A DNA stretch of 64,000 bases from Tubulanus polymorphus (Eukaryota; Animalia; Nemertea). This document shows, in pieces, positions 57,121-64,000 of the stretch (its first letter is position 1; every line of letters starts with the position of its first letter). The notes below the pieces were generated by a model. It searched no databases. It saw only the letters and a list, made by a program, of their open reading frames with translations, and was not told where the DNA came from. Made by a program: the position numbers and the translations under genes. The stretch spans positions 14,371,807-14,435,806 of the forward strand of contig NC_134031.1 of the NCBI RefSeq assembly GCF_964204645.1. The letters are read 5' to 3'.

Positions 57121-57263
57121 TCATCTTCGGTCGTTCCTGTTTTCCCGGCGACAGTGCCGGAAGTAGATTGATTTAGCCACGTTATGCAGAATCAAGTCAA
57201 CAATTTCAAACAGCGTGAAGATACTAGCGCCGAGTAATAAACCCATGTAACCACCGACTTCAC
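57121..57263 (-). CDS. DEG/ENaC last coding exon (TM2 and short C-tail)
   Basis: Acceptor ttttacag; reads (G)EVGGYMGLLLGASIFTLFEIVDLILHNVAKSIYFRHCRRENRNDRR then TGA at 57123-57121. Not in the ORF track. Confidence 0.92.
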
Positions 57264-60200
57264 CTGTAAAACAGTTACAGTAAAATTAAGCGATGGACTG
57301 CTTTGGCGATCTTAGGCCACGCTAAGAAATACCGAGGTTTTCATCAGCCCTTTTGGAAAAGTGACTAGGGCGGCAGGTTTTCTATTTTTACCACCATTTA
57401 AAAAAAGAAATAGAAATAAAAGCCTAATTCAAAATTCCAAAAGTGACGAGGGTGACGATTTTTCCATTTTTTAAATGGGGAAATTTAGGCGTTAACGACC
57501 TTGAATCGGGATGGAAAGCGCTTCGTTACCGAAATACACACCCGCTACGGTAACAATTGGGTAGCGACCATGAAGAAAAACATTAAAGTGTGATCAGGTT
57601 GTTCATCGGATGTGTGTGCGGGAGTGTTTTACAAAAACAAACAAACAAGATTTCTGCACGCTGGATGCGCTTTTCTATTTCTTATTTTTTACTGACGTAG
57701 TGTTTTGACGCGCGCGGAAAATGAAACTGATGAGAAACGAACGACGGTTTTTTGCGTGGCCTTTACACTGTTTAACGATACACAGTTGTTAATCTAAAAG
57801 TTAGTGCTGGGGTATCGTTAGCGTCTAATATTTAGTTTTCAGATCATTACGGACGAGTACATCATTTGAATGACGGGTTGATTCGTTTAACTTTTTTGAT
57901 TCATTAAAAAATCGGATAACAAACTGAAAATCGAATCGATGATATCATAGGGTGTTTTACTAGTGGCCACATTTACTGAATGGTTGCGTTTAGTTCTACT
58001 TACCGAGGAATGAAAACATTCCATAATCTGGGTATTGTTCGATTTTCCTGTAACTCAACTCTTTGAAATACATGTTCAATAAAATCATGTTATTCCTACG
58101 GAAAAGAAACAAACGATGGAAAATTAATTGACAACCAACGAAATAGGACTATGATTTTTGATATCCATGAATATTGATGACCCGTGTATGTCCTGATAGA
58201 CCTAATAATGGTGTCATCAGATTTCTTATTCCAGAATGAACAAGGCCTATAGGCCCGGACACACTGGGCGATTTGGTCGCCCGATTTCGTCGCCCGACGA
58301 AATCGCCGGTAAAATCGCCCAGTGTGTCCGGGCAATCGCCTTCGGCGATTTAGTCGGCCGACGAAATCGCCCGAATCCAACATGTTGGATTCTGTCGCCG
58401 GCGATTTCGTCGCCGGCGACAGAATCGCCCAGTGTGTCCGGGTACGGCGATCAGTCGCCTCGAGCGCCGTATTAACCAGCCAATCACCGCTCTTTGATTT
58501 ATTAAAGGTGGCGCTAGCAGCTGGTCGTTTCAAAATAAGCGGCGCTGTTCGCCGATTTCGTCGCCGACGAAATCGCCCAGTGTGTCCGGGCCTGTCGGCG
58601 ATCAAATCGGTCATAAAATCGGCGGCGATTTCGTCGGCCGATCTCGTCGGCCGACGAAATCGCCCAGTGTGTCCGCGGCTTAACACTGTAGTTAGATTGA
58701 TTATAGAACCTAAAGGAGCTTAGACCTAAGTTGTTAGATTGGTTAAACAATCAAAATAAGCTTCGACTTGTCTTATATTGTAACCATCAAGATGAGACTG
58801 AGTCGTAAGTATTTGGCTATAGAAATAGGCGATGGCCTTCACTGTGTCCAATATTGGGCCTTGAATCTTATTCTCTACCTTATAAACATATGTCTGTCAT
58901 ATCTATCTAAGTCGATTTCAAGAAGGAATTTTTGAATCGTATCTCGAAGATCGTATAAATGTAGTAACGTGTCACTGCGATAACCCTCTAATTGTTGATA
59001 GATCAAATCGAAGACGCTCTGCTCATAGTCGACCCTCTGCTCCCTGGACGACAGGTATTTCTCGCTGAATTGTACGACCAGATAATCGTCGAATAAGTCT
59101 CGCATGTACGCCCTGTCCGAGGTCATTCCAGTCCAGTTCATCGGCGTCGTCCAAAGCAATCTATATTTCTGGTAGATACCGTACTTGCCAACGTCATGTT
59201 GAAGATAGGTGGCGCTCTTTGTTGTCCCGTTGAACGGTGGGAATACTGTTGCGATGGCCAGCCGATAGATGGCAGCTACATCGTTGAGGATCGTCTCCGT
59301 TATTTGCTCCAGACGCTTATAATCGTTTTTGACGGTTGCTAGGAAACTCTTCACGCGACTCACGTCTTGTCCGATTGCTTTGAATATTTTAACGCGTACG
59401 TCGGTCGTCATGGATACATCGTCGAAAAATTCGTCTTGTAATTGCATCCATTTTTCCTTCAACTCAATAATGAAAGGGTCTAGTCGGGAGAGCTCGTTAT
59501 TACGGACGCCGGGCACGTTCCAGCTTACCGGACCCTTTCTGAAGATGGTTTCAGATGCGCTCAATTTAGCCGTTAGATTGCTGTGCGTTGATTTCACGTA
59601 TTCCCAATGGTCTATAAAGTACCCATAACCCGATTTAGCCATCGGAACCGCTTTTGTGCGAAATTCAAAATCCAGCTGCCTGAGTTTACTTGTGTCCAAA
59701 ATTCGCCTGCTACTGTCGGTAAAGTTCAAAGAGTTAACGAACAATGCCGTTTCGTTAAGCGAGCGCCGAAATTGATGACGTTGCGTTCTCTGCGGTTCCG
59801 CATTAGACATGACGTCACCGAATATCTCAGTCGTGTAATACGAATCTCCTGCCTCAATCGCTTTGGAGATTTCGTCAAACAAATCGTTCAAACCGGAAGT
59901 TAGATATTCAATATGGCCGTCCCCTCGTTCGGGTGTGTAGTTTTCGTAAGTGGCCACCAGCCTCGACATGATATCGGCTATGACCTTGGCATGATGTGAA
60001 ATTAAAGTCAAATTTTGGGCAAATTCGTTTTCTGTGATTCGTAAAACCTCATCGACGCACCGGCCGAACTGAACCCGACCCTGATCACCGCCGGTCAACC
60101 CGAGAATGGCCGTCTTCAGTTCCTTGTCGAATAAGTTTTGTTTGATTCGGACAAGGTCGTAGGATAGACTGTTCATTTTTCTACGCAAATCTTGCAACCT

Positions 60201-63200
60201 GCGAGCTTCGATACCTAGCCTTTGGTCAGTGAGCATTGTTTTCATTAAAGTTGCCTCCTTGTATTTGGGTAGGTATTGCCTGCCCAATTTTGCGGTACCT
60301 TTTTTATTAAATAAATCGAACACACTGTCTCCAATACTGGATTGTGACGTAGTTATGTCGTAGGTATGTTTTTTGCAGCTATCCGGGCATTTGCAGGCAG
60401 AATTTCTGACCACTTTGTAAAATTCACCTGGAAAAAAAGCAGGATCCAGTTCCCGAGTTGTGTATTAAGATTTAATTCTGGGCCCGGTTCAATAGTTGTG
60501 AGTAAGAATTGATTCTGAGAAAAGTTTGAAATTAATTTTCGACTCAAGAGTCAAACGTTAAACCTCTTTAAAACTGGAATTTTCAAAATACTAATTCTAG
60601 ACGCCAGATATATTTTTGAGTTAGCGAATTTCATGATTTTTACCTTTGGCTTTTTTAATGGCGAGAACTTTGTATCCGTCGCAGTCTGGCCGGTTAAATT
60701 CAGGCCACTCGGATTCGGGTCTTGTGTATTCGTTATTTATCAACGGTCGCGGGACGCAGTTGAATCTCTTCACGATGTAATTGATAAAACATTCTTCCAT
60801 GCATTTCCCGTGGGTGTAGTGTTTAAATAACGCCAGAGGGCGCTCCGAGCAGTTCCAATGCGGCGGAGGCAGGTTTATATTCTGAAAGAAGAATTGATAC
60901 GTACGCGAAATCCTCATTAACGTATTCAAAGGATACGCGATCCTGTCAATACACAACTTCGTTCATTAGAAAATGTGTTTATCAAACGGGATTCGAACCC
61001 ATGAACGTCAAGTCTTCAATAATTTGCATATTTAAGCTACCACCAATTCGTAGGTTCGAATCCCATTCAAAAGCACTTCATTCTAAAGCACTATGTGTAA
61101 GTATTTAATGTGTATATCGATTTTTGCAGTATTAAGAATGAAAACTTATCCGCATTTTGAAGGAACGACTATTCAGATTTTAGGGGTAACGTCAAGAAGT
61201 TTTTAGTCATGTACCAAAGAATACGTCCTCAATACAGTCTTCGAATACTAGTAGCGCACTGTTCATATCAATAAAGTATCTATTTTGCGAGTAGTTCGGG
61301 CTTGTTACAAGCTAGAATATAGGCTAGTCAATCAAATTGTATTTTCTCTGCAAAAAAAATGATTATTTGACAGTAATTCTACCTCGATAAGTTCTACAGC
61401 AAGAGAAGTCTCGGTTCCTGGAGTCACATGTGTCCCATATTCCGGTAGGGGGAGCTCACCTTGCTCATGCGCCATTATCTGAAATCATAATTATCGTTAC
61501 AAACACTGGGAGTGGTCTAATTAACTAAATACTTATGGTATCAATGAAAACACGTCTTTTAGCCGTAATCTTATATTATAATTACCGTTACAAACACTTT
61601 ATGTGATTTTAATCGACTAAATACTTATGGTTACCATGGAAATACGTCTTTATAGTCGTTATTTAAAATTGTAACTACCGTTACTAACACTGGGTGTGGT
61701 CTAATCAACTAAATACCCCGGTACTTATGGTAACAATGGAAATACGTCTTTTAGCCGATATCTTGCAATCATAATTACCGTTGCAAACACTGGGTGTGGT
61801 CTAATTCACTAAATACTAATGGCAACAATAAAAATGCATATTTTAGCCGATATTTGTAACTATAATTACTGTTACAAGCACTTGGTGTGGTCTAATCAAC
61901 TAAATACTGATGGCAAAAAAATGAAAATGCATCTTTTTGCCGTAATTTGTTATCATAATTACGGTTGCAAACACTGCGGTCTAATTAAATCTCAATACTA
62001 ATGGTCACAAGTAAAATGCATTATTCATAATTATTAGATTAGATTAGATTTCTAGCATACCCCTTCAGATCAAATAATAGTGTTTGCTATGAAACCGGAG
62101 CTGAGAGCTTGTTCAATTCAACAAATATGATTTTTGATTTACCACATTTTCACTCTCCCTATGGACTTAATGAAACTGGCATATCGTTAAACCTATTACG
62201 GTCTAGACTGATTAGCTATTAACTGATGCTATGAAGTGATACGTGACGGCATAACTAATAGAATATCATTATATAACGTAGTTCTGGAAGCTCAGTTATA
62301 GATATATTTTGCATGATTGGGCAAAGTACTCAAAGTTGATATAGACTATTGGGCCAAGTGGTTGAAATGAATACTTTTACCTAGGACTGACATTTTGAAT
62401 TTACCCTTTGAACGTATGTAAGTTCTGGAGCAATCCAACTTAGAATCAAATAGAATGTATCAAATAAATTTATTCACAAAAACAATCTCAGGTAAATTTA
62501 CGTACAATGAGTCCACTTGCACCTTCATAATTCCCGCTTATATATTCGTAGGATTCGACGTTCGCCACTATTCTCAAACCGGAATATAAACCTAAAACGA
62601 ATTAAAAAGGAAATCATGTTTTCCCATTTCTGTTCATATAAACTCGAAACAGTTCTACAGTTCTTATAACTGAAACATTTGCGGAACTGGATCCTGACAG
62701 AAAATGATAAATATTAGAGTCTCATTATGGTTGATGCCAATACCGGGTATCTCAAATTATAGCAAGACCACAACTGTTAATAGAAACATTCAATTTTAGC
62801 ATGCAGTTTTTTTCACATTAACACTTCACCATCAGATTTCAATCTTGTGTAAGTCATTAGTAAATCGTGTACTATGTTTATGTTTGTAAAAGTAGGTACC
62901 TTTTTCATAATAATAAAGAGATGAGTCAGAATTTCTTAAATGAAATCTATTCAAAATTAAGATTTCAATAGTTTTGCATTCCCACTATTTGATGTCTTAC
63001 AGGGGTCTCGTCGTAAAAAAAAGTCTCAAATTGTACGTATATATATATTTCAGTGACTGTGAAATTATTACCGGGTTGTGTCATGTCCAGGCTGCCGTTA
63101 TGCGAATTCACAAACGGTTTAAACGTATAACAGACGCCATAAGCAGAAGTTACAATTGGGTAAAAGTCATCGACATCGCACAGTTCGCCTTTCCATTTAC

Positions 63201-64000
63201 AACTGTGTATTAGAAAGAAAAGTACCATAGACCTTTAAAACATCGCGTATACTAAACCTCGCCATTTGGCATATCAAATGTGAATTATTTTTGGGGGAAT
63301 TTTAGGATGAAACTCATTGCAAAGGAATTTAATCCATCGCGAAAACTAGGTTTCATCATTTGATATATTAGAAATGGAATTATTAACAATGTTATAATTA
63401 AATAATATCAAAGGTCTTTTATGAATATTGTGAAAACTAAACCTCGTCATGTGGTATATCAAATCCTTAACCATTATGTTATAACTAGGCATTTAGAAAT
63501 ATTGAAAGAAAAACTGAACTTGTCACTCAATATTGAAAGAATGTAAAGTCAAACTAGTATTTCGTACAACAGAATTCAAGTTTATGAATTTTCTCTACGT
63601 CCTCTATGTTTCCAACTTCGTCACTTACCCTGATATGAGGTCGTTTATGTCCTGCCGACATCCTTCGTAGACCTTACTCAAATTTGACATGCCTTGTGTG
63701 AAAAAAAAATGAAATGAAAGGCTCGATTTATAAGGGAGTAAAAGCGACCTGTCATAAGATTCTGAAAATCACCAGGATTCGAACCAAAAACACTGTTAAA
63801 TGGGACTAGTACAACACAATTCGAATCGCGGTGAACCCTAAATTCACCCAGTAACGATAACAATTTATTGACAGCTGTTTTGATTACCTGAAATTTCTGG
63901 ACCTCTGTCAACGTTACTAAAAAAATCGATCCACTTTTCTTTATAAGAATTTGTGATCCTGCAAATAGTCGAATATCTCACCATGAAACAAACTATATAA
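57121..64000 (-). CDS. DEG/ENaC (ASIC-like, amiloride-sensitive sodium channel family) gene, 5' end outside window; multi-exon
   Basis: Exons join with consistent GT-AG phases and give family motifs CKWKGELC..DF..YGVCYTF, GLRIVANVESYEY, HEQ..P..G..V.PG.ET, LPPPHWNC..Y...C...C, CKCPDSC, NMILLNMYF.EL.Y..IEQ..DY and TM2 GEVGGYMGLLLGASIFTLFE (GAS filter). Confidence 0.95.
58004..58095 (-). CDS. DEG/ENaC exon (palm beta11-beta12, pre-TM2)
   Basis: Acceptor tttccgtag, donor gtaagt; 92 nt; (R)NNMILLNMYFKELSYRKIEQYPDYGMFSFL(G); phases match both neighbours. Confidence 0.92.
58251..58680. mobile_element. PIF/Harbinger-like MITE in a DEG/ENaC intron
   Basis: TIRs AGGCCCGGACACACTGGGCGATTT / AAATCGCCCAGTGTGTCCGCGGCT; flanks tat/taa; three extra internal TIR copies and many GC-rich palindromes. 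Confidence 0.7.
58879..60427 (-). CDS. DEG/ENaC giant exon (end of thumb, beta10, ~480-aa insertion at the knuckle position)
   Basis: Acceptor tttttttccag, donor gtagag; 1549 nt fully open. Starts (G)EFYKVVRNSACKCPDSCKKHTYDITTSQS, ends DRHMFI(R), and joins in phase to the next exon. Confidence 0.9.
60644..60881 (-). CDS. DEG/ENaC exon (thumb domain)
   Basis: Acceptor ttctttcag, donor gtaaaa; 238 nt; NINLPPPHWNCSERPLALFKHYTHGKCMEECFINYIVKRFNCVP...PDCDGYKVLAIKKAK. Confidence 0.92.
61383..61478 (-). CDS. DEG/ENaC exon (beta-ball)
   Basis: Acceptor atttcag, donor gtagaa; 96 nt; IMAHEQGELPLPEYGTHVTPGTETSLAVELIE. Confidence 0.9.
61470..62034. repeat. ~91-bp intronic tandem repeat, ~6 copies
   Basis: cataattaccgttacaaacactgggtgtggtctaatcaactaaatac recurs every ~91 bp. 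Confidence 0.85.
62506..62591 (-). CDS. DEG/ENaC exon
   Basis: Acceptor gttttag, donor gtacgt; 86 nt; (G)LYSGLRIVANVESYEYISGNYEGASGLI. Confidence 0.88.
63072..63202 (-). CDS. DEG/ENaC exon
   Basis: Acceptor atacacag, donor gtaata; 131 nt; CKWKGELCDVDDFYPIVTSAYGVCYTFKPFVNSHNGSLDMTQP. Confidence 0.9.
63629..63692 (-). CDS. DEG/ENaC exon (finger helix)
   Basis: Poly-T tract then cacacaag acceptor, donor gtaagt; 64 nt; MSNLSKVYEGCRQDINDLIS(G); joins in phase to CKWKG. Confidence 0.8.
63848..63887 (-). CDS. Probable small DEG/ENaC exon (finger region)
   Basis: Acceptor atttcag, donor gtgaat; 40 nt; VIKTAVNKLLSLL(G); phase compatible with the next exon. A further donor (gtgaga) at 63981 suggests another exon running off the window. 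No conserved motif to anchor it. Confidence 0.5.

Follow-up and report, generated by a model that had tools for sequence, protein, structure and literature searches.

We analysed a 64,000-nucleotide stretch of the genome of Tubulanus polymorphus, a palaeonemertean ribbon worm (contig C7:14371807-14435806; hereafter the window), and found in it a channel gene of the DEG/ENaC family, LOC141909180, with an unusual knuckle. A single giant exon of this gene adds ~472 residues to the knuckle, where they separate its two helices, alpha6 and alpha7. We are highly confident that LOC141909180 is a genuine, intact nemertean DEG/ENaC channel gene with this architecture. The insert is predicted, from its sequence and from structure models, to form a soluble, all-helical extracellular domain that sits on every subunit at its top outer corner. 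A long-knuckle DEG/ENaC channel whose added domain acts as a sensor module and modulates gating is our best explanation of the locus as a whole, and one that we hold with modest confidence.

The giant exon was identified by reading the splice borders and frames of the DNA. An earlier note on this stretch, made from the letters alone, had described an open exon of 1549 nt spliced in phase on both sides, and our reading confirmed this. Window positions 58879-60427 on the minus strand form a single open exon (2 nt, 515 codons and 2 nt), and an open reading frame of 512 aa lies at 58875-60413 on the same strand. At a GC content of 40-46%, 515 open codons in a row far exceed what chance would give, and a chance open frame was rejected on this ground. 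A rise in GC of the coding-sequence type was also seen at the exon. The acceptor at 60427 (...ttttttccag/GT) consists of a pyrimidine tract and CAG, and the donor at 58879 (AG/GTAGAG) is in phase 2. The upstream exon ends at 60644 (G/GTAAAA), giving a split codon G+GT for Gly, and the downstream exon begins at 58095 after ...ccgtag, giving a split codon AG+G for Arg. Both junctions are thus in phase with exons homologous to the ASC family (PF00858). The RefSeq model, XP_074655666.1 ("uncharacterized protein LOC141909180"), includes the whole exon as its residues 306-820, with 100% identity.

We mapped the RefSeq protein back onto the window and the 10 kb past its end. Four more 5' exons lie past the window end, including the TM1 exon, which encodes the first of two membrane-spanning segments (TM1, with TM2 as the second), and a post-TM1 exon (YFASHP...FPLVTICN). 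The RefSeq model skips two exons, the TM1 exon and a 96-nt ectodomain exon. Both are intact, with AG/GT borders and the frame kept, and matching stretches are present in the homologue from Lineus longissimus. The locus therefore appears to encode a complete channel, and XP_074655666.1 is probably incomplete. All canonical exons, TM1 included, are intact with AG/GT borders. The last exon (57263-57121) bears out the statement of the earlier note that TM2 and the GAS filter are intact. Its view that the gene looks functional agrees with the intact exons, among them the TM1 exon, which the DNA reading places where RefSeq has none.

Membership in the DEG/ENaC family was assessed by profile matches and by diagnostic features. 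XP_074655666.1 matched Pfam ASC/PF00858 with 141.5 bits (cutoff 23.6) in three stretches, and the Lineus homologue matched with 241.6 bits. Exon 1 contains the HG motif, which precedes TM1, and TM1 in the 69-nt exon and TM2 in the last exon provide the pair of membrane helices that, in this family, flank a large Cys-rich ectodomain. The selectivity-filter motif G/S-x-S is found in GLLLGASIF at 57263-57121. The family feature that is missing is the short connection between the knuckle helices, which are normally joined by a few residues. We regard the long alpha6-alpha7 interval as a variant feature that does not exclude the gene from the family. When solved structures were ranked against the channel core, ASIC stood above BASIC, FaNaC, ENaC and PPK. 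The core matched ASIC1 and ASIC2 structures (such as 6l6p, 4nyk and 7rnn) with E-values of 2e-43 for the Lineus homologue and 8e-20 for the window protein. By these scores, the core of LOC141909180 is closest to the ASICs among solved structures.

The position of the insert was read from alignments to ASIC chains. The Lineus segment that aligns with window positions 60300-60395 follows human ASIC2 (6l6p) to chain residue 392, through alpha6 (SKTSAKYLEKK in Lineus, SRLSNQYVERL in ASIC2). The Lineus protein picks up ASIC2 again at residue 396 (SEKYISENILVLDIFF versus QEKVYREHFSQLNIYF), 458 residues further on. The window protein rejoins ASIC1 at EQYIGENILVLDIFF ("EQYIGEN") with its own HMFIRNNMILLNMYF. 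Coverage of the Pfam ASC profile breaks at 383-398 and restarts at 398 in every group of related loci tested (see below). In the window protein, alpha6 (DSVFDLFNKK) and alpha7 (HMFIRNN) are recognisable on either side of the insert. The ASIC alignments and the Pfam break together indicate that both knuckle helices are kept and that the insert takes the place of the 3-residue linker between them. Because ASC-homologous alpha6 and alpha7 flank the insert within one exon, a nested independent gene was ruled out. The earlier description of a domain in place of the knuckle was therefore right about a large insert at this site and wrong about the helices, which are retained with the insert between them.

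We searched for homologues of the giant exon with phmmer against 1.84 billion representative proteins. This search returned one true relative, Lineus longissimus XP_064618645.1 (953 aa, E 4e-9), which covers query residues 2-506 and whose gene extends over 127 kb. A match to a highly repetitive protein of 889 aa (P0003; E 4e-6 in 8 short stretches) was judged to be a spurious low-complexity match. Further protein searches with the exon, with the Lineus insert region and with the full Lineus protein at 1e-10 returned self-matches only. Searching the Lineus insert against the Tubulanus assembly (268 Mb, 77 contigs) identified a second gene, at C5:22022523-22023986 (E 1e-52; hereafter the C5 gene). 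Its one open exon of ~490 codons has the same kind of start as the window exon (CNC..C...Y..SQ) and terminates in the same F-Y-L motif. It is surrounded by N-terminal, TM1, thumb, beta11-12 and TM2 (GAS) exons. The window, Lineus and C5 inserts are collinear from end to end with short gaps only. Between the window gene and Lineus, identity amounts to 23% for the insert and 36% for the core. The two genera, Tubulanus in Palaeonemertea and Lineus in Pilidiophora, stand on opposite sides of the basal nemertean split, and the occurrence of the insert in both implies that the domain is old.

The window gene belongs to a larger family. We started from PF00858 loci with unusually long open frames and searched the genome with profiles and proteins. 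These searches assigned 22 loci to groups A, D and E and five to group B; the window gene and the C5 gene form group C. Giant exons of 390-620 codons at the same knuckle site thus appear to be present at about 29 loci in this genome, a tally of loci in which gene completeness was read for some, and at least one is found in Lineus. A PF00858 match split at this position, which the earlier note had proposed as a check, was found in Lineus and in every group tested. Each of the 24 further loci that we inspected has one large open exon of 365-619 codons. In 23 of them the exon opens ~10 codons ahead of the post-thumb Cys motif, a start that was not seen at the remaining locus, L043. The exons continue with a long helical-looking stretch and then a terminal alpha7-like motif, x-F-[I/V/Y/L]-x. 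Nine of the loci in groups A, D and E stand in tandem at C6:7109283-7175139, each with a giant knuckle exon of ~490 codons. In three genes of group A, the giant exon was found to be followed by TM2/GAS exons. In groups A, B and C, every giant exon whose acceptor was read has an acceptor in phase 1. In groups A, B, D and E (22 giant exons read) and in the window gene, the donor is in phase 2 and lies two codons past the conserved Phe; the C5 exon was compared by its F-Y-L motif only. In a subgroup of three loci (C6:9867103-9868401, C4:8829455-8830768 and C6:2304072-2305358) the giant exon ends early, at ~425-430 codons (...YQELKK/GTAACG), and an additional intron seems to interrupt the insert. 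The first two of these copies are nearly identical despite lying on different contigs.

We compared the inserts among groups and with a paralogue that has a short knuckle. In the paralogue, at C5:4325900-4326700, this exon keeps the borders and phases of the giant exons in 56 codons, with ~20 residues at the place of the insert. This same-border exon rules out a retained intron as the origin of the insert, which is instead a gain within the exon. The insert profiles of groups A, B and D are homologous over their whole length (hhalign probability 92-98%, E 1e-7 to 1e-11; reversed controls score 7-11). Group C compared with A, B and D together gave a global probability of 26%, an E-value of 1.4e-4 and a score of 24 over 354 collinear columns, and seven reversed or shuffled controls scored 1-7. 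A hidden Markov model built from the group C inserts matched no other paralogue group in the genome. These comparisons are most simply read as one ancient origin, short of proof for group C. The inserts of the tandem C6 loci are all open and, among the eight compared, 50-82% identical, with pairwise ratios of nonsynonymous to synonymous substitution (dN/dS) of 0.33-0.72. These ratios indicate protein-level constraint on a fast-evolving domain.

The composition of the insert fits a probably N-glycosylated, helical ectodomain segment. The insert contains both amphipathic runs, all seven N-X-T sequons and the one Cys that the earlier note listed. Seven sequons compare with 2.7 expected (p 0.013) in the window insert and nine with 3.4 expected (p 0.001) in the Lineus insert, and the six in the C5 insert do not differ significantly from the 4.5 expected. 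The insert is thus probably N-glycosylated, to judge by these sites. Helical amphipathicity lies 4.2-4.7 standard scores (z) above shuffles in all three inserts. The insert has no segment resembling a transmembrane helix (top Kyte-Doolittle window of 19 residues at most 1.28), and self-BLAST detected no internal repeats. Searches of the insert against Pfam, transposon and viral families included, gave no family above threshold, and searches against the sequences of the PDB, including a profile search with the insert alignment, gave no match.

Structures of the window and Lineus inserts were modelled with AlphaFold2 from 3-sequence alignments. Confidence in the models was low: the mean predicted local distance difference test (pLDDT) score was 46.4 in the window model and 51.5 in the Lineus model. 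Both consist almost wholly of helices, the longest reaching 50-60 residues, and both contain a better-defined central block of ~160 residues that reaches pLDDT 70-86 in the Lineus model. The earlier note had envisaged an out-and-back helical stalk that roughly doubles the ectodomain. Its ectodomain location is supported, and its long helices agree with the low-confidence models, from which the out-and-back geometry cannot be read. Foldseek comparison of the insert model with the PDB gave nothing at E<=0.001, and its top rows were generic long-helix proteins (TM score ~0.23). The ESM Atlas, searched by features and by shape, gave nothing relevant. VIA-align, applied to residues ~82-266 of the Lineus model (160-185 residues, pLDDT 57-86), ranked the bacterial four-helix-bundle sensor domains of PcaY, Tsr and Tar at the top, with Z 10-11.5 and a root-mean-square deviation of ~3 A; by the program's own advice, Z below ~13 is ordinary for helical bundles. 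These bacterial domains have no sequence or Pfam relation to the insert, and we treat the superposition as a resemblance only.

We propose that the exon for the post-thumb strand and knuckle grew from ~56 to 515 codons through ~470 residues gained in the alpha6-alpha7 loop, and that the insert would serve as an added recognition or sensor module. The domain would be rooted in both knuckle helices and would be mechanically continuous with beta10, which leads to the thumb, and with beta11-beta12, which leads to TM2. Its conformational state could then be passed through alpha6 and alpha7 to beta10 and beta11 of the upper palm, and also to the neighbouring finger, and gating would thereby be biased. 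The three copies of the insert in a channel may also contact one another. In FaNaC1 of Malacoceros, alpha6 and the finger helices of the neighbouring subunit form the neuropeptide pocket at the same top outer corner (PMC11026163), and the nemertean insert emerges right after alpha6. Changes in the ENaC knuckle alter Na+ self-inhibition, according to work cited in PMC6827283. Two features favour receptor-like diversification, the tandem expansion and the faster evolution of the insert relative to the core, and this pattern leads us to prefer a recognition or sensor module over a mechanical tether. We offer the sensor role itself tentatively.

Several observations weigh against this proposal. 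Both structure models are of low confidence (mean pLDDT 46 and 51.5), and the fold matches from Foldseek, VIA-align and the ESM Atlas do not rise above helical-bundle noise. Prediction of a three-copy complex from insert residues 104-384 gave a score of 0.00 and an uncertain fold, which speaks neither for nor against trimerisation. For every family member, the function of the insert is one that we infer. The profile-profile links that join group C to groups A, B and D are below significance, and the homology of the group C insert to those larger groups is suggestive. Support from the RefSeq model is imperfect because it lacks two short exons, one of them TM1, and it is this model, together with conservation, that speaks for the whole exon being retained in mRNA.

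A built-in mechanical tether, which the earlier note had named first, ahead of a ligand-binding module, is the likeliest of the rivals, and we think it unlikely. An elongated helical stalk might anchor the channel top to mucus, cilia or the cuticle-free epidermal matrix; displacement would then tug on the knuckle and upper palm and thereby open the pore. Nematodes are known to have DEG/ENaC mechanosensors, predicted helices of 50-60 residues would be ~8 nm long, and the attachment point is coupled directly to beta10 and beta11. However, Pfam searches found no adhesion or matrix-binding motifs or domains, no binding partner is known, and tandem expansion with fast inserts (the dN/dS values and the insert and core identities given above) looks more like receptor diversification than like an anchor. 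The insert might instead have no part in gating and act as a glycosylated spacer or shield, as an assembly or subunit-sorting domain, or as a trafficking or quality-control element. Sequon enrichment, low sequence conservation and relaxed constraint are consistent with such roles, and ~29 paralogues make a heteromer sorting code conceivable. Against them, length and collinearity are kept across the deepest nemertean split, and the corner that the insert occupies is known to influence gating; we consider this group of explanations improbable.

Two further alternatives concern whether the domain is real and where it came from. Internal splicing might trim the open frame from the mature mRNA, or the gene might be decaying, and a RefSeq model without TM1 and the 96-nt exon would fit such an artefact. 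Its probability is very low in our estimate, given 515 codons that are open and in phase, a layout that is also open in Lineus, the C5 gene and ~27 other loci, intact canonical exons with AG/GT borders, and the coding-type GC rise. A captured transposon, viral or foreign open frame, in frame by chance, would account for a 1.4-kb gain within an exon, the origin of which is otherwise unexplained. Yet the insert sequence of the window gene is single-copy in the Tubulanus genome, and related exons occur inside DEG/ENaC genes only. The match to a transposon or virus that the earlier note named as a possible refutation did not appear, with no such Pfam domain above threshold and no copy outside DEG/ENaC genes. 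The proteins searched held nothing else related, and the same site is conserved in Lineus; capture is accordingly the scarcely credible extreme among these explanations.

We compared the long-knuckle architecture with characterised members of the family. ASIC1 and ASIC2 share with the window gene the HG motif, the post-TM1 FP..T.CN, the Cys-rich thumb, the beta10-alpha6-alpha7-beta11 order and the TM2 G-A-S; the likeness to ASICs here consists of nearest-structure scores. They differ in having 3 residues between alpha6 and alpha7, compared with ~472 in the window gene and 458 in Lineus. The nearest precedent for the insert is the set of small knuckle-loop insertions in the TadNaCs of Trichoplax, which also have extra sequence between alpha6 and alpha7. 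Those inserts, compared by position, are small, appear as loops in homology models rather than as a ~450-residue domain, and belong to another phylum. The nematode degenerins MEC-4 and DEG-1, like the enlarged nemertean subunits, have lineage-specific ectodomain segments, which are linked to mechanosensation; their extra regions are Cys-rich, much shorter, and lie before the thumb, and are not known from the knuckle. FaNaC1 shares ligand recognition at the top outer corner but has its elaborations in the finger and a knuckle of normal size, and the Lineus core matches ASIC (2e-43) better than FaNaC (7e-24).

Full-text literature searches found no description of a long alpha6-alpha7 insert, nor an already characterised long-knuckle clade, on which the earlier note had made novelty depend. 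Two phylogenetic papers that sample nemertean DEG/ENaCs do not mention the architecture. The supplementary alignment of an eLife 2023 ASIC paper, as stored, contains other nemertean sequences, and this gene is not among them. DEG/ENaC channels are a model for the fitting of one trimeric scaffold to protons, peptides, proteases, salt and force, and most of the adaptations known so far lie in the finger, thumb and palm. With a folded domain in the alpha6-alpha7 loop that matches the remaining ectodomain in size, this scaffold would be equipped in a new way. With ~29 loci in one genome, the long-knuckle channels may make up a major family of sensory receptors in ribbon worms. A bolder form of the proposal is that they constitute a new, nemertean-expanded class of receptor channel, with dozens of genes, in which the ~450-residue helical domain is the primary sensor of a ligand or of force. 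We regard this as possible but somewhat doubtful; if true, gating would run by way of the knuckle and upper palm, a path used by no characterised member. Long- and short-knuckle paralogues with the same exon structure provide natural material on the coupling of knuckle and gate, and the 1.4-kb gain of coding sequence within an exon raises an evolutionary question of its own.

Table 1. Features of LOC141909180 in window coordinates.
Feature	Position	Strand	Content
Last coding exon	57121..57263	-	TM2 with G-A-S filter (GLLLGASIFTLFEIVD), short C-terminus, stop codon
Palm strands beta11-beta12 exon	58004..58095	-	NNMILLNMYFKELSYRKIEQ...
Giant exon	58879..60427	-	Encodes post-thumb Cys motif, beta10, alpha6, insert, alpha7 start
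Alpha7 start (HMFIR)	58879..58892	-	phmmer aligns HMFIRNNMILLNMYF to ASIC1 EQYIGENILVLDIFF; phase-2 donor AG/GT
Insert proper	58893..60308	-	~472 aa, XP_074655666.1 residues ~345-816
ASC-homologous exon start	60300..60395	-	CKCPDSC...Y motif, beta10 YDITTSQSSIG, alpha6 DSVFDLFNKK; Pfam ASC 356-383
Thumb-domain exon	60644..60881	-	NINLPPPHWNC ... AIKKAKG; Pfam ASC 269-324, E 5e-8
96-nt in-frame ASC exon	61383..61478	-	IMAHEQGELPLPEYG...LIE; AG/GT borders; not in RefSeq model
ASC exon	62506..62591	-	LYSGLRIVANVESYEY...
ASC exon	63072..63202	-	CKWKGELCDVDDF...GVCYTF...
ASC exon	63629..63692	-	MSNLSKVYEGCRQDINDLISG
ASC exon	63888..63958	-	ITNSYKEKWIDFFSNVDRGPEISG
TM1 exon, 69 nt	window-equivalent 66114-66182 (2.1 kb past window end)		FVWLILCVGIIGSFCFIVIIRY; in phase; not in RefSeq model

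A GC-rich, highly palindromic repeat block lies at 58245-58680, in the intron that separates the giant and beta11 exons; it has 58-nt terminal inverted arms (GGCCCGGACACACTGGGCGATTT...) and many internal CGGCGATTTCGTCGCC units. The block looks like a miniature inverted-repeat transposable element, and it accounts for several spurious open reading frames on both strands. In another intron, at ~60975-61065 on the minus strand, there are two tRNA-like T-arm boxes, GGGATTCGAACC and GGGTTCGAATCCC. ARAGORN called no tRNA in this stretch, which may be a fragment of a short interspersed nuclear element. Past the window end, at window-equivalent ~65650-65950, a minisatellite within an intron can be read as a repeating frame that resembles a peptide.

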